Positions 38,701 through 55,252 of a DNA stretch of 64,000 nucleotides are shown here, one piece after another; the stretch's first letter is position 1; every line of letters begins with the position of its first letter. Source of the stretch: Setoptus koraiensis. Its lineage: Eukaryota; Animalia; Arthropoda. The translations under genes and the position numbers were made by a program. A model generated the notes under the pieces. The model was not told the origin of the DNA. It made no database searches and was given only the letters and a program-made list of their open reading frames with translations. The stretch covers positions 3,658,001-3,722,000 of the forward strand of contig CM106586.1 of NCBI GenBank assembly GCA_048013815.1, given 5' to 3'.

Positions 38701-41700
38701 ATTGTATTTTTCACCCTTCACTTATTGCCATTTCGCTTCATTTTCCCAATCACTTATTAACGCGAGAAGTGAGGGCGATCACTGAAATTTGAATAATAAT
38801 CTACATTGTCGAAATTACAACTTTCTCGCTCCGGCTCTCACTCTGTTACGTACGCGAAAACAACTAATCAACTGGCTTGGTCTCGATCAGTCGGTGCAAG
38901 TATGCGTATGCAAGTGATGACGAGCACCCATGATTATTAAATGAGTTGCTCTCTCATGGTATAACCAAGTTTAGCCAACCGACACGATGGGCGAGCCATC
39001 TAATTGGTATGACATCAACGATGATGGTGACCCTGTCGGTCACCATTAACCAGTCGATAGGTCAGTTGTGGTGTTTTTAGCTACTATCAATTAACGACCA
39101 TCTAATCTAATTAGATACAAACAAACTCCGCCGTTTATTATTAATATTAATATAAATTATTACTATTATTATTGCTGTCGCGCTGATACATGAGCATGAG
39201 TGTAATGGCAATAATCGGGTCAACTCCGGCAACAATTGATCAATGGGCTCGACGGACGCATAACATGCCAGCCACACGAGCGAAATTGATTTTTTCCAGT
39301 TGGCCCATCGGTTCGTCGCATGGCCGCAATTGGCCCAACAATTGTCTCTGCAATCTACTTATACCACTCATGTTGCCAGAACACAGCGACAACTAAAAAT
39401 CTGATTACGAGAAACATATTCAATTTAAGGGTTGATTGTTACGACGAGTTCAAGTTGATAACATTGAACCGAGCTATCTGGTTAGATGATCGAAATCAAT
39501 AAATTGTAAATGTAAATGAACGATCAACGCCATCTCAAGTCAAGGGTTGCTCTGCGCAAAGTATGAAAGTTTATCTGGCGCGTACCGTGTGCCCAGTCGG
39601 GCCCCAGTGGACGCGACACGACCATTTTGTGATTATTGTGACCATTGTGACCACGATATGACCACTGTGACAACGAGCAACAAGCCGGAAAAGAGCATAG
39701 ATTGATATTTGACGGTTGCGCCGATTATAATCATCTGACATCGAAGCGTCACGGCGTGTAATTTTTCATGTATCGTCTCGTAACAATCGTAGCCATGCGA
39801 GCCACTGGTACAGACAAGTCAGTGACTTATCATCTCAAACAATATTATCTCCCTGTGCCAATCTTATTGTTGTTGGCTCTCTTTATCGAAACAGAGAGTT
39901 TGTTCATTCATACAGTTCATGCAAACAGCGCCAGACAATCACTCTTAACTGGTCGGCACAATTCTTGCAAATTGTTACGGCACAAGGGAAGAGGAAATGG
40001 TCAGCACATTTAATTAGCATTGAATTTCTCGTTTGCTGGACACTCTCTAGTTGCGCCTGTCAGACGCCGGCGGTTGCATTGGGATCCAGATCAATTGAGA
40101 TCGTCTTCAACTATCTGACTTTTTCACTCGTTATTTAGCTGCATTGCGCACTAAACTGATACTATTGTGTAACAAAATTGTTTGGCGCCGTTTCAACTGG
40201 CACAACAGCACAATGTAGCCGATTTGTAACAAGTGCAAGACACAAATTGCGTTCATTATGTTCGTCATTGATCATTGATGGTCAAATAATCAAATAATGG
40301 TAACAGGGTAATTGTAACGATGATCTCAAGCCGAAAAGTGTGCCTCTTATGCTGTCAGTGAGCTGTTTGTGTTTGTAACCCCAAACTGGGCCAATGTTTG
40401 TTGCCTCGACAGTCGAATGTTAACAGTCAATGTTAACTAACCTATTAACTTTTGTGCAACAAATGTTAAAAATTTTGCATGATCTTGCAGAGTGTGTCTT
40501 TGTTTCTCTTACAATGGCGTTGTCGGTTAAGAGGAACGACTAATTTAGTGATTATTTGGAGCTAATTTGATATTATTTTCAGTGTGTGTGCGTGTGTGTG
40601 TGAGTGTGTGTGCGTGTGTGTGTGAGTGAGTGTGTGTGTGTGTGTGTACGCGTTTGTGTGAGTTCCATTGAAATAAAATGAAGCCGAAGTTATGACAAGG
40701 AGATAAGCAACAACAAGTTGCCACTTCTTTCTACATGCACGCACACACAGAGACGGACAGAAAGATAATGAAAGATTGGCGACCTTGAAATCGATCAAAA
40801 TCATCAGAGAGGAGAGCAGCAACCTAATAACAGCAGTGTAATAACAACAACAACGACAACCTGCTCATTCTTATGATTTAATCAAACCTGATTGCTTTTA
40901 CTTAGATTTCTTTGGCCGCTGCCGCTGCTCTTGTTGGCTTCTGCGAATTGTTGCAACCGTATTAACGTATTATGAGATGATAACAGGGACAGAGTGTTGT
41001 TGCTTTTGTTATGGCCAGCACCACCACCACCACCACCACCGCCTATCGTTGGTTGGCGTCTTTTTGTCGTCGTGGTTGTTGCATGTAACGAGTGATCTGA
41101 GATTGCATTTGAACCTGTTGCTGCTGCTGCTGCTGTTGTTGCGTCCAACTTTATTACTGCAACTAATATTATAAATATAACGTTTTCACTTTTCACCTGT
41201 TTTTGCTGCTGCCGCTGCTGCTGCCGCTGTTGCATTGTTAAATGGAGCTGGCTGGCTCTCTCGCTATCTAATTGAATATCCACCAGCAGCCGCCACCAGT
41301 TGTTGCTGTTGTTGTGTTAATCATGAACGAATAATTGCTTGCTATGTTTGTTTTTGCTAATTACAATCCACCAGCCGGCCCAGCGGCCAGCCAGCGAAGC
41401 GATACTAATCTAGATCTCTCGAATTTGGCCCGCCGTCTACCACGCGGTGTCTTTATTAGTTTGATCATTGATAGAGCCAGAGACAGATGGAGAGAGAGAG
41501 AGAGAGAGAGGGAGACACTTGTACAAATACTGTTGCAAACGGCTTAAACCTTAATCTGGCTTAATACGCTCCACGATGGCCGGTCCCGTTACGACAGCAA
41601 CACAATCGGCCATTCAAGCTGGCCCCTATATGTGCGACCACGAGCTTCCAAGACAGAGCTGACATTACGGCGAGATAGAGAGCGAGATAGAGAGTCGTTG

Positions 41701-42980: not shown

Positions 42981-43748
42981 ATGTACGCCATAGCAGTTGT
43001 CCTCGCCTGTTTAGTCGGTGCCAGCCAAGCCTCATACTTGGCCCCATTAGGCGCCCCATTAGCCGCTCCTCTAGTTGCACCAGCACCATTCACAACAACC
43101 GCACACGTTGGTAACGTAGCAACAGGTGTATCAAGAGCCTACACAAATGTGCCACAATCCCGATTCACCCGCACCGACTGGAACCAACCAGGTGAGTAGA
43201 CTATTGATTGAGTCACATATAAACTTGTAAAATTGTTCTCATCGGTTTCAGAATAAAGTTCGATTGTAGTACTAATCGCTATATCGCAATATCATCGTCA
43301 ATTATTACCCATGAACCAAATGAAACATTAGGCTCACTCATCACAGCCCCAATTCACGCACCAATCATCGCTCCAGTTTTCGGAAACATCGCCGTTCCAG
43401 GCCCAACCCGTTACGAGCAATTCTTAGTACCAGTAAGTTGATTAAACATATCCAAAACATATATATCATATTATTTGGTTCAAGCCAACCAACTGTATTG
43501 TCGCTAGATTAACTGATTAACTAACCAACTTACAACTAATGTTATTTAATCAATTTAAATTCGACTTACAGAACCCACCCAGAGTGCTCCACGAGACCCA
43601 CTACCAACCTGGTGTTGCTCATGTCCCAACTGTCGCCCATGTCCCAGCTGCCGTCCCAGTTGCTGCACCAGCTTACCCAGTGCCAGCCGCCCCAGTAGCT
43701 GCCGCCCCAGCCTACCCAGCTCCAGCACCAGTCAAAGGATACTACTAG
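42981..43748 (+). CDS. Secreted low-complexity Ala/Pro/Val-rich cuticular-type protein, 162 aa
   Basis: Exons 42981-43191, 43332-43432, 43572-43748 (GT-AG, phases 1 and 0, 489 nt). Signal peptide MYAIAVVLACLVGASQA; AAP(V/A) repeats and a GYY end, typical of arthropod cuticle proteins; no chitin-binding R&R consensus recognised. Confidence 0.75.
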
Positions 43749-44194
43749 ATGTCGTAAAGATACAACAACAACAACATCAACACAAACACAAATTGTCTGA
43801 ATGAAACTCAACCATTCTATCACCTGATACACCTGTATGATGAATAAATTAGTTAGTCAGCTATGTATGGGCTATCCTGACGCTTCCGTTGCATCTATCC
43901 TTGTGAGAGTAGCACTCAAGTAAATGGAACCTACTATATACTAAACTATCAGAACCATTGATGAGCTAATTGAAGCTGATTATTTGTGTGAAGTGAGAAT
44001 GTGGCTAGCAAATTGTTGTTCTGTAAAAACTGACCTACATCCCAAGTGTACAAGAATGGCATTGCAAAGTTATTAATATTGATAAATAAAGTCCATATAT
44101 AGTTCTATATATATATATATAATTTTAAATAATATACACACGAATCAACAACAGTATCTAAATACTCGTCCATGTCCCTAGTTAGATATAACTA

Positions 44195-45022
44195 CTACTT
44201 TTTTTTGAATTTCGAAAATTGCAACAGAATGGCAGCTTCTATGTCTTCGGCTGTTTTTGTTTGGCCAAAATAATCAGCTAGGTTACCATTTGGATCAATT
44301 AAATATGATATTATAGTGTGATCTACTATGTAATCGTTGTCTTTATCCTTGGGACCGACACTGTAGTAGACCCTGTAGGCTCTTGTCGCCTTTTCCACTT
44401 GCTCTTTGGTGCCAGTTAGTCCAATGAATTTGGACGAGAACTCTGACAGGTATTTGGCCAAATTCTCTGGCGTGTCGCGTTCCGGATCAACAGAAATGAA
44501 TAAAGGTACTAGATCCACTTTAGAGCCTATTTTCTCAATCACTGTAGCCAATTTTTCTAGCTCCTCTGGGCAGATGTCGGGGCAGTTGGTGAAGCCAAAG
44601 TAAATGAGAATCCATTTTCCGGACCACTCTGATGACTTTCTGAGTTTATTCTGTGTGTCGACAAGTTCGAAATCACCTCCGATAGCTGGTTTCCCGAAAG
44701 AACGGGCCTTTTGCAAGGCTTGTTGCTTTAATTTTTGCTCTCTCAAATATAACGTGTATCCATAGAGGCCGGCGAGTAGGCCTCCACCAATGAGCAACGA
44801 CTTCCATGTGATAGGTCCACCTGTCTTCCAGCTAGAGCCAACAAATCTGCCCTTGAGTGATGGACGTTGTTTACTTGAGTCACAGAACGACCTCGAATTG
44901 TTGGGACACGATCTGACCCATGGAAATAAGACTAAATCCCTGTTGAGTAATGACTGATAACAACCACGAGTATCTGTTCTCTGCACAGTTAACTTTATAG
45001 CCTGCCTCGTGAAAGCAAGCAT
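44195..45022 (-). CDS. SCO1: SCO1/SCO2-family mitochondrial copper chaperone, 275 aa, intronless
   Basis: Copper motif YFGFTNCPDICPEEL, single TM (GPITWKSLLIGGGLLAGLYGY), IGGDFELVD, ISVDPERDT, YIVDHTIISYLIDP. Confidence 0.95.
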   Translation of the reverse strand: MLAFTRQAIKLTVQRTDTRGCYQSLLNRDLVLFPWVRSCPNNSRSFCDSSKQRPSLKGRFVGSSWKTGGPITWKSLLIGGGLLAGLYGYTLYLREQKLKQQALQKARSFGKPAIGGDFELVDTQNKLRKSSEWSGKWILIYFGFTNCPDICPEELEKLATVIEKIGSKVDLVPLFISVDPERDTPENLAKYLSEFSSKFIGLTGTKEQVEKATRAYRVYYSVGPKDKDNDYIVDHTIISYLIDPNGNLADYFGQTKTAEDIEAAILLQFSKFKKK

Positions 45023-45179
45023 AGTGGATAGGTCAAATGGGTGTCAATTTGATGTTGAAGATGTATTTTTATCTCACAGTCGACGATATTTGGATAGACT
45101 TATCAAGCATTTGTTGGGGCCCTTTCTCACTTGAGAATCTCATTTGACCACATGTGCCACAAATTCTTTGAGTTTGAAC

Positions 45180-45189
45180 TGCGCATGCG
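45180..45189. promoter_or_regulatory. Candidate NRF-1/Erect wing site (TGCGCATGCG)
   Basis: Palindromic core GCGCATGCG about 160 bp upstream of the SCO1 ATG; NRF-1 controls respiratory genes. Motif match only. Confidence 0.35.
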
Positions 45190-45322
45190 TCTCAAATTGT
45201 AAAAGTTTAAATTACCCGCACAATCATTTGCTCGTGAAAATGACGTTTTGTCATGTTTTTTACTGCACACAAGGTGGCCCACAATGAGTGATTGTGGAGC
45301 ACCTCGATTGGAGGGAAATATT

Positions 45323-45332
45323 GCGCGCCAAA
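45323..45332 (-). promoter_or_regulatory. Candidate E2F site (TTTGGCGCGC) in the SCO1/PCNA bidirectional promoter
   Basis: gcgcgccaaa on the plus strand matches TTTSSCGC on the minus strand; a second partial site cgcgaaa lies near 45466. PCNA is a textbook E2F target. Motif match only. Confidence 0.45.
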
Positions 45333-45648
45333 TGGCTGCACATCCATTGGGTTTTGTATGAACGACAATACATACACACTTGCATACAGACGCACAGACG
45401 CACATACAAACTAAATCGCCGGCGCAGCAATACACACACACACACACACGTACACACGCACCAACGCGAAATATTCATGGACTGGTATTGTTGTTGTTGA
45501 GCGGCGATCAGTTCGCATCTTCCGACAATACAGTACATATAATTCCCTTGCATCCACTCCTAATCTCATATCAATTCAGAGTTGAATAATTTTTATTGTG
45601 TCATTCTTACGTGATTGATTGTGTCATTATTTTACGAAACATTTATAA

Positions 45649-46608
<960 letters not shown>

Positions 46609-46683
46609 AAAATTCATTATTTTATTTGTATTGCCTTCCTAGATAATTGAAGAAAAATAGCTCATTAAACGTTAGTTAACAAA

Positions 46684-47733
46684 TCATGATAGCTTTTTCA
46701 TCTTGGCTACAAAGAAACCGTCAGTGTTGTGCGTGTGCGGATAAAATCTTCTTGTCATAGACATTGTGGGATGAAAGTGAAGCCCTCTAAAATTCTTGAA
46801 GCCGGCTCTTCCAAATTCTAATCCAGTCTCAACAAGTTTAACTTTTCTTTTGCGGAGGGCGTATTCAATGACCGATTCGTTTTCTTCTACAAGAATGGAA
46901 CATGTGGAGTAAACAAGGTAACCACCTTTCTGTGATTTGGCGTCCAAACAATCAATAGCAGCAAGTAACAATTCCTTCTGCAGGTGACTACACCTTTTCA
47001 CATCTTTCCAGTCTTTCTCAGCCTTTACCGACGGATCCTTTATTGCCACCCCACTACCTGTACAAGGGGCATCTAGAAGCACACGATCGAATCCTGTCAT
47101 AATCTTGGGAAACTTTCGTCCGTCGTGACAACTGATAACGGTGTTGATAACCCCCAAACGATGGCAATTAGCCGAGACAGCTCTGCAACGCTCCCTGCTG
47201 ATGTCATTAGCAAATATAACACCTGTATTTTTCATCAATTGTGCAATGTGCGTAGTCTTACCGCCGGGGGCAGCTGAGAGATCGAGTATTCTATCGCCTG
47301 GTTGTGGCGCCAAGGCCATAACTGGTAGCAAAGATCCTGCTCCTTGTAATATGTAGTGGCCAGCTAAATAGGAAGAGGTCGCGCCAATAGGTACTGGTGA
47401 ATCATATACAATGAGTCCAACCTTAGACCATTCTACCGGATCAACATTCACGCCGAGTGCTATGAGCTCCTGAGCTAGTTCTTTACGTCTGGTCTTTAAA
47501 GTGTTAGTTCTGATTGTTACTGGTCGTTCGGTCTCACTAGCCTCGAGGAATTGCTTTAGTTCTTCTACTGGGAAGAGATTCATCACCAAGCGCATCATGT
47601 AGTCATTGTAACCGTATTTCCAGCAGAGTTCTTGCCTTAGCTTTGTCCGATCGGTGGTGGTGTCTTCAGAGTCCTCAGGATCGCTGCAGTCCGGTTCCGG
47701 CTCCTCGAACGTTTCATTCTCTGGGTCCATCAT
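46684..47733 (-). CDS. NOP2: NOP2/NSUN1 rRNA m5C methyltransferase core with an eIF3b-derived N-terminal 28 aa; 349 aa, intronless
   Basis: ERPVTIRTNTLK, GHYILQGAGSLLPV, RILDLSAAPGGKTTHIA, FDRVLLDAPCTG, LVYSTCS, RRFYPHTHNTDGFFVAK. N-terminus MMDPENETFEEPEPD... aligns with the eIF3b start at 53080. Confidence 0.93.
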   Translation of the reverse strand: MMDPENETFEEPEPDCSDPEDSEDTTTDRTKLRQELCWKYGYNDYMMRLVMNLFPVEELKQFLEASETERPVTIRTNTLKTRRKELAQELIALGVNVDPVEWSKVGLIVYDSPVPIGATSSYLAGHYILQGAGSLLPVMALAPQPGDRILDLSAAPGGKTTHIAQLMKNTGVIFANDISRERCRAVSANCHRLGVINTVISCHDGRKFPKIMTGFDRVLLDAPCTGSGVAIKDPSVKAEKDWKDVKRCSHLQKELLLAAIDCLDAKSQKGGYLVYSTCSILVEENESVIEYALRKRKVKLVETGLEFGRAGFKNFRGLHFHPTMSMTRRFYPHTHNTDGFFVAKMKKLS

Positions 47734-48562
47734 GATCTGTATGTGAGAAATAAATGATTCGTAATTGATAGTAATATCCTAATTAGTTATTTGGTGATTA
47801 TATCGGACTTGTTAATCATAAATGTAATGTAGTAACTAACAAACAACATATTTGCATGTCGCTGATGTTGTGGTATCGCGTAGATTCTTTTTTCGCGTGT
47901 GTCTGCCATGCTTTCGCTGTGTGCAAAATAGCGTTCGTAATGGCGCTAAATACGAATGATCAAGAAATTTTAGTGATCGGGGGAGGTATTCCTCCCACCT
48001 CCCGCTATATGGGCTTGGACCTCCCGCTTCCCACCTCCCCCTCCCAGTTGGTCTCCCTGTTGGAGAAAGCAAAAGAAACGATTGGCCAGCTCCGCGAGCT
48101 GTTATTCACATTCAGTGTTTATTTTGTGCAGTTCGGCCCGTAGTCGCGTGTCGACCAGTCTGTTTACATATTGCTTGCAAGATAAAAAAAATCTCATCTA
48201 CATTAGGCTCTCACTTATTACACCGATCCAATATGTTTGCCTTCTCGAAACAGGCCCTTAAGTTGGCCGTAATGAGGACAGAAGCTCGATGTCAGTCATT
48301 GCTCAATAAAGAATCGATCGCATCAGCTTGGGTGGGATCATATCGTATCAAAGACCCTGATAGTTACGTCAATACCTTCCCACAACCCCGCAGATGGCCG
48401 CGTTATAATGAGATCGTTCAACCACCCCAAACAGACCCAACTGAGGAGAGAAGACCTGCTACGTACTACCACTATCGATCAAATATTAAGTATTCACCCA
48501 AAAAGATGTGGTTCATTGTAAAATTCATTCGAGGAATGTCCGTCGACGAGGCGGTGAAGCAA
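47650..48562. repeat. Copy A of the inverted segmental duplication (eIF3b stub + bidirectional promoter + mRpL22 5' part)
   Basis: 47650-47968 aligns to the reverse complement of 52825-53163, and 48154-48562 to the reverse complement of 52371-52769. The central 185 bp (47969-48153) is unique to this copy. Confidence 0.95.
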
Positions 48563-48892
48563 TTATCATTTGTTGACAAGAAAGGTGCCCAGATCGCCAA
48601 AGAGACTCTCCTTGAAGCTCAAGCAATTGCTGTTAAGAAACACAATTTCGAGTTTAAATCAAACATGTGGATAGAAGAGGCATTGTGCGGAAAGGGCCTA
48701 GTCATCAAGGGAGTCAGAAAGCACGCTAAACAACACATTGGTATAATCAATTATTTTTATGTACATCTTTTGTTCAAATTGACCGAGGGACCTCCGCCTA
48801 GACATTATTATGAGCCACCAAAGGATGGAAACGATCTCTTGAAAGAGTACTTTGATAAACTAAGAAATAGAAAGATACCATTAGGTATTTAA
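48233..48892 (+). CDS. mRpL22: Mitochondrial ribosomal protein L22, 219 aa, intronless
   Basis: NIKYSPKKMWFIVKFIRGMSVDEAVKQLSFVDKKGA, HNFEFKSNMWI, KGVRKHAKQHIGIINYFYVHLLFKLTEGPPP; basic presequence-like N-terminus. Confidence 0.93.
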   Translation: MFAFSKQALKLAVMRTEARCQSLLNKESIASAWVGSYRIKDPDSYVNTFPQPRRWPRYNEIVQPPQTDPTEERRPATYYHYRSNIKYSPKKMWFIVKFIRGMSVDEAVKQLSFVDKKGAQIAKETLLEAQAIAVKKHNFEFKSNMWIEEALCGKGLVIKGVRKHAKQHIGIINYFYVHLLFKLTEGPPPRHYYEPPKDGNDLLKEYFDKLRNRKIPLGI

Positions 48893-49610
48893 CAAACGCG
48901 AGTGTTGCAATAAATCTCGAGTTTCTGAGAAACACATTTTTTCATATTTCGCATATTGATTGCCACATTTATCTTGTTAATAATCTCTCATTTTATTCAT
49001 TTCTTTCTAACTAAACATCAACTGCAAGACTTGTTGTTATTGCCAAAGTAACTTTTCAAGACAAAAATGCTACCTGTTTCAACATCTTTCTGCCTCCTTT
49101 TGATTAATTGAGATAAGCAGAGTATTGCACAATCAACATACGCTTTTCCTACATCATAGTTTTAATGTGTACATTCTCTCTGCTGATACCACAGAACCAG
49201 CTTGAAGTATTTTACGTACCATTCAAAAAGTTGTTGATTAAATAATGACATAGTTGATTTGTTTTCATCCATCTCTTTATCCTAGCTTTAAGGTGCTAAT
49301 GTATTTTTAACAGATAGCTGATAACTATCATGAGACTTCGACGAGACACGTACAAAACTAGAATGTAACGAAAGTCATAGACTACTAACATAATGATTGC
49401 ACTATCTACGTAACATGTATTCTAACTTACCACCTTAAGAGGCTTTGCTAAAAAATCTAACTTTTCTATCAAACTTGTTACAAACACGATTCAACGTCTT
49501 TCGAAAGTTCTGTGCGATAATCATGCATATATCTTTCGTACAAAAGAGTTAAACAATAGTCATTGTTACATTATCTTTGGAGAAGCATCGCAATTTAAAA
49601 ATTTGTCAAA

Positions 49611-50983
49611 ATGAATCGACTAGTTATACTTTGTGCAATAGTTTCAATCATACCTACAGTTTTTTTGGAGGCCCAAGAGACTTTTGTAAGTATAATATAG
49701 CAATTATAGACCGAACTTCCTTATTTTGTTCCAATTCAAACAACTAATTTTTGTTACATTCACCCACTAATCCGAAGAGCGGTGATGAGGATGTTAATTT
49801 AAATAATGAAATTAGTCCCCGCGATGCCTTTGTCCCTGAAAAGTCCGAGCTGTACCGATTCAGTCGTTCATCTGATTACCAAGTATTTGAGCCACAACAG
49901 AGACTAGAGGCCTCATCAGGGCATGGCTCTTCTAGGCAAAGTGAGGGTTCTGCCTCATCGAGTCGCCTTCTATCCTCCGCATCCAGTGACGAATCATCTT
50001 CATCATCGTCGTCATCATCTCAATCATCTCAAACAACAACTACAACTACCACCACTACACAACAGCAACCTCAAGTGACTGCGAGATTGCAAGAGATCAG
50101 AGTGCATACGATACCTCATTCGCAAGCCATACATTATCCTGGCTTTATAGTGGTACCACAAAGTAGTGTTATTAGACAGGAAGCATCTAATGAAGGATCA
50201 AAATCAGCTAGGATTGAGGAGCAGTCGGAGACCTCTCAACAATCGTCGTCTAGCAAGAACAGTGAAGCTGAGACTGTATCAGTGGTACAACCGCCGGCAG
50301 CCACAACTTTCGTGATCAAGCCATCACTTGCTCCAGTTGGCCCCGATTGTGTTCTACATAGACTAATCGTAGAGCGACCTGTGACAGATTCTTTAGTTAT
50401 CTCTGTTCCAAACACAATAAATATCAGCAAGTCGTCATCAAGCTCCTCCTCATCATCTGCACGCATCACCGATGTGACACCTGCTGTTGAACCGCCGGCA
50501 GTCGTTCCACCAGTGTGTTGTTTTGTCAAGAAAACAACTCCATTGGCAAGATTGGTTGTACCACCGCCACCACCACAACCTTCTGGAAGCTTGAAAGAAG
50601 AACATTTCCACCAAGAAAGTAGATCAAGTCGCGAGGAAACACACGGTTTGGGTTCATCTTCCGTATCATCTTCATCTTCTTCATCATCGTCGTCATCTTC
50701 TAAGACTCAGCAAAAGTCTACAGAGACTTCGGCCGCCATCCATCTTGCACCAGTGCCGGCCCCAATCATTGTAGCTGAGGCTCCGAAGCCTGTTGTATTG
50801 GCCGCTATAAAAGCAATACCTGTGCAATCGAACGATCATTACTCAGTAAATGTTGATCATCACTACTCTGGACCAAACGTCAAGTATGGTTATTCAATTA
50901 AGCAATCATCTTCAGAACAACCGAAAATTGACAGCGCTAAATTGATAGCTGGAGACCGCGTTCTATATTTCAGCAAGAAATAA
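49611..50983 (+). CDS. Secreted Ser/Thr/Pro-rich low-complexity protein of unknown function (possibly cuticular), 426 aa
   Basis: Exon 1 49611-49685 encodes a signal peptide (MNRLVILCAIVSIIPTVFLEA) and ends at gtaagt; acceptor AG at 49776-49777 is in frame with the long ORF to 50983 (1281 nt total). Poly-Ser and poly-Thr tracts, PAPIIV/APKPVV segments. Confidence 0.75.
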
Positions 50984-51196: not shown

Positions 51197-52691
51197 TCAC
51201 AGTACTTCGAGATCGACATGTTTCACCCTAGGATGAGTTCGCTATTCATTTGACAGAGTTCATAATTAGTAGGTGAAAAGAAGAGGAATAGAAACAAATT
51301 GTGGAATGAAAGTTAGTTTGAGTGCCATCAGGTGACAAAGTTACTATATTGTAGCAATAGATACTTACTCTCAATTCCTTTTCGATACGGTCGACTTCAG
51401 CGCCTAGTGTATCTACAACATTTTCACCGTGCTTGATAACGAATTTCGCAGCGTCTTTCTCATCCTTGATAAGTCTAATCTCATCAAGGAGTGCACCTTT
51501 ATCAATCTTTTCGATATATCGCTTGGATAATTCACGACCATCAACATCAACCTCAGCTTTATATCTGATAACTCCATTTCCGAGATCTGTTGCTTTCACA
51601 TCATGTATAGCCCGTATGATAACATCTTTTTCTATAATTTGATTGATGGCATTCAATGTATCACTTGGTATAGAACGACCTACCAATGCAACGGTATTTT
51701 TCTTGATAATGAACGTGGCTACTCCTCCTAATAGACTTCCGATGAGTATTGATCCCACGGCATCAAATACGTGGGAACCATAATAAGACGTAAGGGCCAT
51801 GCACGATGCTGCGATGCCGATGCCCAAAACAGCTGCAACGTCTTCCAGTAACACAACTATAACTCCGGGATCTCTATTTCTGGCTATGTAGTCTTTCATG
51901 CTGATTTTGGAATTCCTCGCCCCTATGTTGAGAGCTCTTACTGCCATAAATAAAGTAGCACTTTCGGAAATCAACGAAAATGCGAGTATTGCATACGCCC
52001 ATGATGGAGAGCAAGTCAAGTCAGGTTGCAGCAATCCCTCAATCCCATGATATACCGACAGACCACAACCAACACAGAATATTCCAACACCTGATATGAG
52101 AGGTGCTATATAACGCATTGGATGATAACCATAAGGGTGATCAGGGGTAGGACTCTGCAAGGATTTTCGGATGCCTACAGCTAATATCAATTGATTGGCT
52201 GTGTCGGCGAAAGAATGAATGGCTTCGGCGAATAAAGAATGAGATCCAGTGTAGAACCAGGCTCCAGATTTTGCGACGAAGTTAGCAAAATTTATAATCA
52301 CAGCACCCCAAACAACTCGACTAGAACTTCTAAGTGTCTCCTCTTCTTCTTTGCTCTCAATGGAAGACGATTGCCTTATCGCCTCATCGATGGGCATTCC
52401 ACGAATGAATCTATCTATGTGCCACATCTTCTCTGGTGAGTTCGGTCGATATTTACGATATGCTGCGGATCCTCTCGCCTCGTGTGGCTCAACCTTGGGT
52501 GTTTGAATTATCTCATTATAATGTGGACGTCTGCGAGGTCTCGGCAGCCAATTGTTGTAAATATCAGGATCTTTAATTAAATATGATCCCACCCAAGCTG
52601 ATGCAACTGTGTTATTGTTAAGTGACGACTGACTGCAAGCTTCTGTCCTCATCACAGCCAACTTGAGGGCCTGTTTAGAAAAGGCAAACAT
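51197..52691 (-). CDS. SLC30A9: SLC30A9/ZnT9 mitochondrial zinc transporter with an mRpL22-derived N-terminus; 455 aa
   Basis: Exon 1 52691-51369, 127-nt intron (gtaagt...aatag), exon 2 51241-51197 encoding RTHPRVKHVDLEVL*. Motifs AWFYTGSHSLFAEAIHSFADTANQ, HPYGYH, VVLLEDVAAV, IHDVKATD, YKAEVDVDG, DTLGAEVDRIEKEL. ATG at 52691 preferred over the ORF-track start at 52916. Confidence 0.92.
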
Positions 52692-53163
52692 ATTGGATCG
52701 GTGTAATAAGTGAGAGCCTAATGTAGAAGAGATTTTTTTGTCTTGCAAGCAATACGTAAATAGACTGGTTAAAAATCTATTGAGGCACTTTCTATTTGTT
52801 GCTAACATATGATTCCTGAATGTCATTTCTTGGTCATTCGTATTTAGCGCCATTACGAAGGCTACTCTGCGCACAGCGGAAAGCATGACAGACAGACACA
52901 CGCAAAAAAAATGCATATACGCGAAACTACCGCTACTAAACCATCGGCGGTATGCAAATATATTGTTTGTTTGTTATTACACTACATTTATGACTAACAA
53001 GTCCAATATAATCAATTCTAATTTAACTAAATAGGATATTACTATCAATCAAGAATCATTTATTTCTTACATACAGATCATGATAGACCGAGAGAATGGA
53101 ATTTACGAGGAGCCGGAACCGGACTTCAACGATCCGGAGAACTTTGAAGACACCATAACCGAT
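52371..53163. repeat. Copy B of the inverted segmental duplication
   Basis: Reverse complement shares catgatctgtatgt.agaaataaatgattc, gtaatggcgctaaatacgaatga.caagaaat and tctacattaggctctcacttattacaccgatccaatatgtttgcctt with copy A; central 55 bp (52770-52824) differs. Confidence 0.95.
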
Positions 53164-55252
53164 CAGGAACTTCTGGGTGATCTCTTAAAGCAGAAGCCTC
53201 AAAAATATGACGGCCTTTCAGCGTCCATTGTCATAGACGGTCTTCCTCCAGTTGGTCCAGATAAATTGGAAAAGCTCAAAGGTGTTATAAACAAATTAGT
53301 GACAAAATATGGTACACCTGTCACTACTGACTACCCCTTAGATGACAACGGCAATACTAAAGGGTAAGTATTTTTTAACTGTTGTCATTTGCTATAAGGT
53401 CTTCTAATGCTTCTAGTTGTATTAATAAGAGAATCTTCCTATACTTCTTGTCTGTTCCACTCTTCACAATAGATTCCTATTTGTCGAATTTGAGAACGCC
53501 ACACAAGCCATGGCTGCCGTCAAAGGACTTGAGAGGGGTCACCGTCTTGATAAGCAACATAAATTACAAGTCAATGCTTTCCATGATATCTCTAAATATT
53601 CAAATCTAACCAAGAATTGGACCCAGCCAAAACCACAGGCTTATGTTGACAGAGGAAATCTTAGATCTTGGCTCTTGGAACCAAACTGCTATGATCAGTA
53701 TGGTGTGGTCCACAACGGTGGCATGTCCACTAGTATTTATTTGAACACAAATCCAGAGCCGACAGTGATTAAAACGCGTGAATTATGGACAGAATCTATC
53801 ATCTGTTGGTCACCCAATGGTACATATCTAGCTACATGCCATGCCAAAGGTATCGCCTTATGGGCTGGAGCGGACTTTGGCTGCAAAATACAAAAATTTG
53901 TACATGAAGATGTCAACTTTTTAGACTTCTCACCTAGCGAGCAATACTTGGTTACATTCAGCCCAAATCTGGCTCAGCAGGGAGACCAGCATGCTATAAT
54001 TATTTGGGAGATAAGATCTGGAGCCAAAAAACGTTGGTTCCCAGTAGATGAGGCTCAATGCCCTTGGCCTCTATTTAGGTGGTCCCACGATGATAAATTC
54101 TTCGCCAAGATGAATCAAGATTCGTTGAGTGTTTATTCAGTGAACGAAACACCACCATTCGGTTTATTAGACAAAAAGTCTATCAAAATTAATGGCATCA
54201 AGGGTTTCACTTGGTCTCCAACTGACAACATACTAGCGTACTGGGTAGCCGAAGACCAAAATGTTCCAGCTCGTGTAACTTTAATGGATATGCCTTCGAA
54301 GACAGAACTAAGATCCAAAAATTTATTCAACGTTGCAGATTGTAAGATGTACTGGCAAAAACATGGAGATTATTTATGCGTTCAAGTTCAACGTTATGCC
54401 AAAGCCAGAAAAGAGAAGAACGAGTGGAAATACAGTGGCCTCTACTACAACTATGAAATATTCTATTTAAGAGCCAAGTTGGTACCTGTTGATAGCTTCG
54501 AAATCAAGGAAATTGTGGTCTCCTTTGCATGGGAACCAATCGGCAACAAATTTGGTATTATAGTAGGAGAAACAGCTCAACACTCTGTTTTATTCTATGA
54601 AATTAAAGGTGACAAAGTAGAATTAGTAAAGAGATTCGAAAACAAGACCTGCAATCAGTTGTTTTGGTCACCCGCCGGCCAATTTGTCCTTCTTGCAAGT
54701 CCCCGCGGAGGTATGAACCGACAACTTGAATGGATTGATACATCTGATATGACTGTCACAGCAAAGAATGAGCACTTCATGATGACTGATGTCGAATGGG
54801 ATCCAACAGGACGCTACGTAACTACGATGGTCAGTTATTGGGAACACAAAGCTGATAACTCTTATTGGCTCTGGTCGTTCAATGGTCGATTAATACGAAA
54901 GCACAACCTAGAGGGCTTTTGTCAGTTACTGTGGCGTCCTAGGCCGCCCACCTTACTATCAGCAGAAAAGATTGCTGAGATAAAGAAGAACCTAAAGAAT
55001 TACTCCAATCAATTTGACCTCAAGGATAAAGCAGCGAGCAACCAAGTTTCACGGACCATTTTGGAGAAGAGGAAGAAACTGGTTAGTGAATTCGAGGCCT
55101 ATCGCCAAAGTAAGAGGCAAGCCTTTGAAGCTATGGTTGCAGAGCTACGAAGCATGAGGAACGGAAAGTTATTGAGACCCGACGATGAAGATATTGTACA
55201 GGAAGAAGTTATAGAATTATTTGTAAAAGAGGAAACGCTACCCGTCAATTGA
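53080..55252 (+). CDS. eIF3b: Eukaryotic translation initiation factor 3 subunit B (RRM plus beta-propeller), 687 aa
   Basis: Exons 53080-53363 and 53473-55252 (phase-2 GT-AG; 2064 nt). EEPEPDFNDP...ELLGDLL, IVIDGLPPVG, TKG|FLFVEF (RNP1), LDKQH, WSPNGTYLAT, WSHDDKFFA, EWDPTGRYV, LWRPRPPTLL. Probable 5' intron 52950-53076; an in-frame ATG at 52911 could add 14 aa. Confidence 0.96.

Follow-up and report, generated by a model that had tools for sequence, protein, structure and literature searches.

A mitochondrial presequence is usually seen as belonging to its own gene and drifting slowly with it, and to our knowledge almost all documented presequence takeovers concern plant genes that had newly left the mitochondrial genome. 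The closest described systems are plant presequences copied from other nuclear genes: that of rice rps11 from atp2/coxVb (Kadowaki et al. 1996), that of Arabidopsis sdh3 from hsp70 and that of carrot rps10 from hsp22 (all listed in PMC2631504). RPS14 and SDHB of rice and maize share one presequence through alternative splicing (cited in PMC2631504). A precedent of another kind comes from Drosophila inversions, where staggered breaks leave inverted duplications at the breakpoints (Ranz et al. 2007, PMC1885836).

In the window (the whole 64-kb stretch of gall-mite DNA that was analysed), SCO1 is a single intronless open reading frame of 275 codons on the minus strand (44195 to 45022), identified from the ORF list, Pfam and its orthologs. 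It matches the SCO1/SenC family (PF02630, E 4e-47, residues 115 to 247), contains the motifs CPDICP (CxxxC) and DHT (distal His), and is 60 to 71% identical to about 50 eriophyoid SCO1 proteins, that of Aceria tosichella among them. M1 is the sole methionine codon of the frame, with a stop codon nine codons upstream. Proteins of this family are anchored in the inner membrane and have a stop-transfer-type segment; the membrane anchor found here, KSLLIGGGLLAGLYGYTLYL, aligns with the anchors of the orthologs, and an N-terminal extension is present but foreign. The native part, delimited by BLASTP to ortholog P0002 and by Pfam, begins at residue 41 (44195 to 44902, minus strand) and comprises a linker (NNSRSF..), the anchor (about 44744 to 44803) and the SCO1/SenC domain (44282 to 44680).

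Ahead of this native part, the alignments confirm what can be read as a diverged copy of the 5′ UTR and first 38 to 40 or so codons of mRpL22, with SCO1's own presequence gone. mRpL22 is a 219-codon ORF on the plus strand (48233 to 48892; Pfam Ribosomal_L22), and the donor-type segment, made up of its 5′ UTR (−105 to −1) and codons 1 to 38, lies at 48128 to 48346 on the plus strand within a cassette that we call copy A. The corresponding 5′ UTR and leader within copy B (52584 to 52796, minus strand) head ZnT9/SLC30A9 (Cation_efflux), where a motif scan of all six frames placed the third leader copy at 52691 on the minus strand; the first 107 residues of ZnT9 are mRpL22-like. The two cassettes form an inverted duplication (47649 to 48584 versus 52349 to 53164), and blastn and tblastn found no copy of the leader in the 64-kb window besides those of SCO1, copy A and copy B. 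The preliminary description had proposed that three mitochondrial genes have one leader in common, and this was borne out for SCO1, mRpL22 and ZnT9.

The SCO1 leader occupies codons 1 to 38 (MLAFTRQAIKL...QSLLNRDLVLFPWVRS; 44909 to 45022, minus strand; tblastn against the whole window, E 8e-8). BLASTP of these residues against mRpL22 residues 1 to 36 found 20 of 38 positions identical and 27 of 38 positive, with two gaps of one residue each (E 4e-8), a likeness for which the 17 identities in 27 residues counted in the preliminary description were a conservative figure. Aligned with the mRpL22 head by Smith-Waterman, the leader scored 87; 5000 shuffles averaged 17.9 and peaked at 39, and the background on real presequences (n=237) reached at most 28 against 118 SCO1 and 30 against 119 ZnT9 N-termini. 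By these comparisons the likeness is real and lies far above that of shuffled or unrelated real presequences. At the DNA level, sensitive blastn aligned 44910 to 45127 with copy B (52585 to 52793) at 62% over 218 nt (E 8e-16), and 44898 to 45074 with copy A (48180 to 48351) at 65% over 179 nt (E 1.5e-14), so that the earlier claim of homology between the SCO1 and mRpL22 heads stands for both protein and DNA.

The mRpL22-derived 5′ UTR abuts the SCO1 ATG and measures 105 bp (45023 to 45127, minus strand), as given by an ATG-anchored alignment and by the extent of the blastn match to 45127. Over −105 to −1 the anchored sequences align in register with z scores of 5.2 against mRpL22 and 7.2 against the ZnT9 copy, a score equalled by none of 3000 shuffles and none of 15 real promoters from the window. 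Past this point (−160 to −106) the anchored alignment shows no homology and does no better than chance (z about 0). When 300 bp of upstream DNA alone were aligned locally and without an anchor under stringent scoring, the result was not significant (z 1.5 to 2.0), the upstream significance emerging only under softer scoring or ATG anchoring. The upstream similarity, earlier put at about 130 bp, holds to −105; the earlier extent was about 25 bp too long, and its 'aaatga.attc' block is unsupported.

The direction of the transfer can be read from other mites. About 40 other eriophyoid mRpL22 proteins (59 to 72% identical, including that of Fragariocoptes setiger) carry PLLNK.lvA.AWVGSYRIRNP just ahead of the L22 domain. 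The eriophyoid uL22m motif LLNK..lvA.AWVGS is present in the SCO1 leader, where it reads LLNRDLVLFPWVRS, and SCO1 has no L22 domain according to Pfam. Against the L22 heads of other species the leader scores 39 to 46 by Smith-Waterman (background maximum 30). The N-termini of SCO1 in related mites were also examined, and the heads of about 50 eriophyoid orthologs are unrelated, basic and MASILAR-like, none of them with an mRpL22-type leader. Since the motif is kept in about 40 mRpL22 proteins and no such head occurs in about 50 SCO1 orthologs, the leader belonged ancestrally to mRpL22, and the transfer ran from mRpL22 to SCO1. By the same comparison, SCO1 gained it in the lineage of this genome, after the split from every SCO1-bearing relative in the databases. 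A phmmer search with SCO1 residues 1 to 110 against 1.84 billion representatives returned no match at E 1e-3, a degenerate 32-nt pattern for M[FL]AF[ST][KR]QA[LI]KL had no match in JGI metagenome contigs, and the runs of two further organisms, which belong to the same study, matched at 80% likeness only in conserved coding stretches of PCNA, of NOP2 and of the SCO1 3′ part, with nothing over the SCO1 head.

The junction is sharply defined. BLASTP of SCO1 against ortholog P0002 begins exactly at SCO1 residue 41 and P0002 residue 29 (NNSRSFCDSSKQ versus NNSTSNNDTSKQ), and mRpL22 similarity stops at SCO1 residue 38, or 39 if TGT derives from TAT; codons 39 and 40 (C, P; 44903 to 44908, minus strand) can be assigned to neither parent. 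Hence about 28 ancestral codons were replaced in frame by 38 to 40 foreign ones. Neither SCO1 nor mRpL22 contains an intron, in this genome or in relatives, so that exon shuffling is ruled out and the SCO1 head is a DNA fusion. A search for a relic of the old SCO1 head in 43000 to 49000, by tblastn with 11 ortholog N-termini and by blastn with the 5′ regions of contigs L007 and L006, found only noise. The SCO1 orthologs listed from mites and insects already have a basic N-terminal extension of their own, and the case is therefore one of replacement and not of first acquisition.

The gene neighbourhood has been broken repeatedly. In the window, SCO1 and NOP2 are separated by PCNA, which is encoded on the strand opposite to both (45715 to 46608, plus strand; exon 1 45715 to 45935, intron 45936 to 46028, exon 2 46029 to 46608), and the L22-derived piece sits between the PCNA upstream region and the SCO1 body. 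In another eriophyoid (Logan SRR29548331, L007:294-2398), NOP2 is followed by SCO1 in tandem, 173 bp apart. Similarity to this NOP2 begins at residue 29 of NOP2 in the window, past an eIF3b stub. A more distant mite has SCO1 and mRpL22 on separate large contigs, and there mRpL22 adjoins mRpS2, eIF3b and a gene for a 410-residue serine-rich protein. Because NOP2 and SCO1 are adjacent in the first of these mites, PCNA stands between them here and SCO1 is located elsewhere in the distant mite, the SCO1 5′ flank is a rearrangement breakpoint, and the 11 kb from SCO1 to eIF3b has been broken at least three times. The preliminary description had inferred a locally active process of duplication and fusion; the position of PCNA between NOP2 and SCO1 and the A/B inversion agree with a repeatedly broken neighbourhood, but a local process as such is not established by them. 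The serine-rich ORF downstream of mRpL22 (49751 to 50983), for which no Pfam family is on record, has a counterpart of 44% identity in the distant eriophyoid (L004/L005:13939-14802), where it likewise follows mRpL22 at a distance of about 3.3 kb, a piece of conserved neighbourhood that outlasted the local rearrangements.

We consider it probable that the front end of mRpL22 was copied as DNA onto SCO1, replacing its presequence and 5′ flank. About 225 bp of the mRpL22 front (the 5′ UTR from −105, the ATG and the first 38 to 40 codons) would have been duplicated as DNA and joined, flipped and in frame, to SCO1 at what is now codon 41, ousting about 28 original codons (the presequence) together with the original 5′ flank. 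This would have happened probably with a local rearrangement that also set PCNA between SCO1 and its former upstream neighbour NOP2. The copy now forms the 5′ UTR of SCO1 and holds the sole ATG of the gene, and it would also serve as the N-terminal signal for mitochondrial targeting. Both the DNA-level repair at a breakpoint and the timing of the event are what we infer from the arrangement of the locus.

The two copies face opposite ways, that of SCO1 on the minus and that of mRpL22 on the plus strand, an inverted orientation that recalls the duplications at Drosophila inversions (PMC1885836): in both there are two inverted copies of an ancestrally unique gene end, a few kilobases apart, in a repeatedly broken region. 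A single staggered-break inversion between the two copies was considered and does not readily yield the gene order of the outgroups. Undoing it predicts divergent SCO1/NOP2 and PCNA/mRpL22 pairs, and the outgroup order is a NOP2-SCO1 tandem (L007) with mRpL22 beside mRpS2 and eIF3b (L004/L005), so that adjacency would be kept and orientation would not. Unlike the staggered-break duplications (PMC1885836), then, undoing the inversion would not restore the NOP2-SCO1 tandem, which would call for more events or another mechanism.

The plant takeovers (PMC2631504) also bear comparison. As there, the putative targeting sequence of SCO1 has been copied from a second nuclear gene with a mitochondrial product, the donor still has its original, and the orthologs of the recipient (SCO1) lack the sequence of the extension while those of the donor (mRpL22) have it. 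Unlike the plant recipients of that account, which had freshly moved from the mitochondrial genome and had no presequence, SCO1 is an old nuclear gene in which a working presequence was replaced. It also differs from the plant cases in that it is found in an animal, includes the 5′ UTR, involves no introns and has as donor a neighbour 3 kb away. With RPS14/SDHB (PMC2631504) it has in common that one targeting signal serves different mitochondrial proteins; however, there one DNA copy is shared as RNA, whereas here there are three DNA copies, each with its own transcript.

A close parallel is the ZnT9 head in the same window. The donor module and the neighbourhood are the same, and in both cases the copy is flipped relative to the donor, in frame, and gives the start codon. 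ZnT9's copy, in contrast, is far longer: its cassette of at least 815 bp takes in 107 codons, all of the bidirectional intergenic region and the head of eIF3b. It is common to a relative in ENA metagenome data (ERZ28604231 scaffold_1002, L001), the single close relative that came to light; ZnT9 there is 93% identical in its body and also mRpL22-headed, and of the three genes that scaffold bears ZnT9 alone. SCO1's copy extends only from −105 to codon 38 to 40 (about +120), with boundaries and substitutions of its own. The scaffold of the ENA relative is interrupted by an N gap (L001:424-437) in the part derived from L22. Its 5′ UTR can hardly be aligned with that of the window, whereas the promoter further upstream is about 90% identical. 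The SCO1 head carries neither the ZnT9-specific derived states nor those common to the present copies A and B. The different boundaries and the missing states support a SCO1 capture separate from the ZnT9 event, and on these grounds the independent capture proposed in the preliminary description holds.

It is quite unlikely that the SCO1 head was taken at second hand, from the copy B lineage borne by ZnT9. Such a source would account for the closeness of SCO1 to the middle of copy B, noted earlier and valid for −105 to −61 (29/45 identities to copy B versus 25/45 to copy A), for the 64% identity to copy B versus 55% to copy A over 125 upstream columns, and for the codons AGG (R6) and ACT (T12), which are common to SCO1 and the ZnT9 head of the ENA relative. 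These shared states are best read as ancestral, however, with copy A having diverged in −105 to −80 and A and B having been homogenised later. The coding part of SCO1 is nearer to mRpL22 (66%) than to the ZnT9 of the window (61%), and at +73 to +92 SCO1 has the ancestral LL, like mRpL22 and the outgroup L22 proteins, where both ZnT9 heads (window and ENA relative) have a derived S. Given the retained LL, the SCO1 head probably came from mRpL22 itself or from a cassette of very early date.

The preliminary description had also called the SCO1 copy older, and on divergence this finds no support: synonymous differences are saturated in all pairs (pS 0.49 to 0.68), even between the orthologous ZnT9 heads of the window and the ENA relative, and the apparent youth of A and B stems from homogenisation. 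Dating by synonymous divergence was dropped because of the saturation. Copies A and B are 94 to 96% identical in a tract from about −80 to +50 (48150 to 48285 and 52640 to 52775) and about 75% identical elsewhere. Within the tract, five coding sites group mRpL22 with the ZnT9 of the window against SCO1 with the relative's ZnT9, no site supports another grouping, and the TTGACCTAT block before the ATG gives the same grouping as the five sites. The informative sites counted were those of the coding part and this block; the UTR count was held unreliable, as the ENA UTR is at about random identity. The tract bears the signature of a gene conversion between the inverted copies, which would have occurred after the split from the ENA relative. 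Since SCO1 keeps the unconverted states, its copy can be said, on these sites, to predate the homogenisation of A and B. At one site L is kept in SCO1 and the other three copies have S or T, which hints that the SCO1 copy may be earlier than the original A/B duplication; branch lengths in the UTR hint the opposite way, in a comparison where the relative's UTR is too diverged to trust.

As for the function of the leader, we infer that it directs the mitochondrial import of SCO1. Over its 38 residues it has six basic and two acidic residues (D17 and D29), a net charge of +4 that equals that of the mRpL22 head, and its dN/dS against the other copies is 0.15 to 0.33, a value obtained from 36 codons with saturated synonymous sites. 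Its helical hydrophobic moment is 0.26, compared with 0.35 to 0.52 in ancestral SCO1 presequences, and the SCO1 orthologs all keep a basic N-terminal extension of 30 to 60 residues. The lower amphipathicity, the presence of D17 and D29 and the inner-membrane anchoring with a stop-transfer-type segment known for the family would agree with the L22-derived stretch being a dispensable appendage, one that gives SCO1 a start codon and an expression context and leaves targeting to internal signals such as the membrane anchor. We give this explanation a low probability, considering the six basic residues and net charge of +4, the restrained non-synonymous divergence, the basic extension of 30 to 60 residues in all orthologs, and that mRpL22 and ZnT9 have no N-terminal extension for import other than this stretch.

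The leader appears to be transcribed with the gene. In run X7, an identical unspliced contig covers 44869 to 45112 (minus strand) and runs without interruption from the 5′ UTR, of which it includes 90 nt or more, through the leader to the end of SCO1 codon 51. The run is of no recorded type and was judged RNA-like from a PCNA contig lacking a GT..AG intron of 93 nt (spliced joint 45935/46029) and from an intergenic depth of 0. This PCNA contig continues through NOP2 on the other strand (45632 to 47846), the convergent 3′ ends overlapping or abutting. The run also contains a 767-nt contig just 80% identical to the 3′ part of SCO1 (44259 to 44432), which may stem from a paralogue or from a second mite present in the sample. 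Contigs of the runs are cut at (CA)n-type microsatellites in the SCO1-PCNA intergenic region (45390 to 45460) and further upstream (40560 to 40720). The mRpL22 contig (48149 to 48895) starts at −84 and the 5′ end of the SCO1 contig is at −90, within about 4 nt of homologous positions in the alignment; these ends suggest a start site common to both genes, although at a depth of about 3.5 contig ends are poor markers of transcript ends. A capture of the mRpL22 promoter, as proposed at first, finds no firm support, since the homology ends at −105, about 15 bp past the 5′ end of the RNA contig at −90. What was certainly copied, going by the alignments, is the 5′ UTR and the leader.

This end of the homology bears on the nature of the template. 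The copy might have been templated by the 5′ part of the mRpL22 transcript (as cDNA or by RNA-templated repair), bringing no promoter, and it is consistent with this that the similarity ends within about 15 to 20 nt of the contig ends (−84 in mRpL22, −90 in SCO1) and that nothing similar lies upstream of −105. However, contig ends do not map transcript starts, and the block AGAAAG.GCC.CAA at −105 to −90, common to SCO1 and both ZnT9 copies, is at the edge of a conserved promoter block and may itself be promoter DNA. The ZnT9 sister event, moreover, copied the whole intergenic region and was thus at the DNA level. We regard an RNA template as very unlikely and retain the copying of the mRpL22 front end as DNA, in a comparison where the intronless SCO1 and mRpL22 give no discriminating intron.

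Presequences are alike in composition and the stringent unanchored upstream alignment was not significant, but it is extremely improbable that the likeness of SCO1 and mRpL22 reflects chance or the convergence of amphipathic basic presequences, given the BLASTP E of 4e-8, a score of 87 against a maximum of 28 to 30 for 237 real presequences and 105 bp of non-coding DNA aligned in register, or that SCO1 was the donor, given that LLNK..AWVGS is kept in the L22 of about 40 other mites and missing from about 50 SCO1 orthologs.

With the mRpL22 front end as the source, an ancient and essential animal gene for cytochrome oxidase assembly gave up a presequence that worked and took over the one of a gene for a ribosomal protein. 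The case is well delimited, with an exact junction (residue 41), a known donor and direction, dozens of outgroup sequences and the same donor for a second recipient (ZnT9). Together with ZnT9 it forms a natural series on the interchangeability of presequences and on how compact genomes tolerate breakpoints inside genes; SCO1 alone would be a further member of such a series and no new principle. A wider generalization seems doubtful to us: that this streamlined mite genome of two chromosomes routinely survives breaks in its very small intergenic regions by pasting the flipped 5′ UTR and first codons of a neighbour onto a decapitated gene, that the mRpL22 head would have been reused at least twice independently, that presequences of old nuclear genes would be interchangeable and turn over at the time scale of a genus, and that a subset of such events, SCO1's included, may have been RNA-templated.

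Elsewhere in the window, positions 725 to 837 form an imperfect palindrome; it spans about 110 nt with 73% self-complementarity and has no relation to the SCO1 head.
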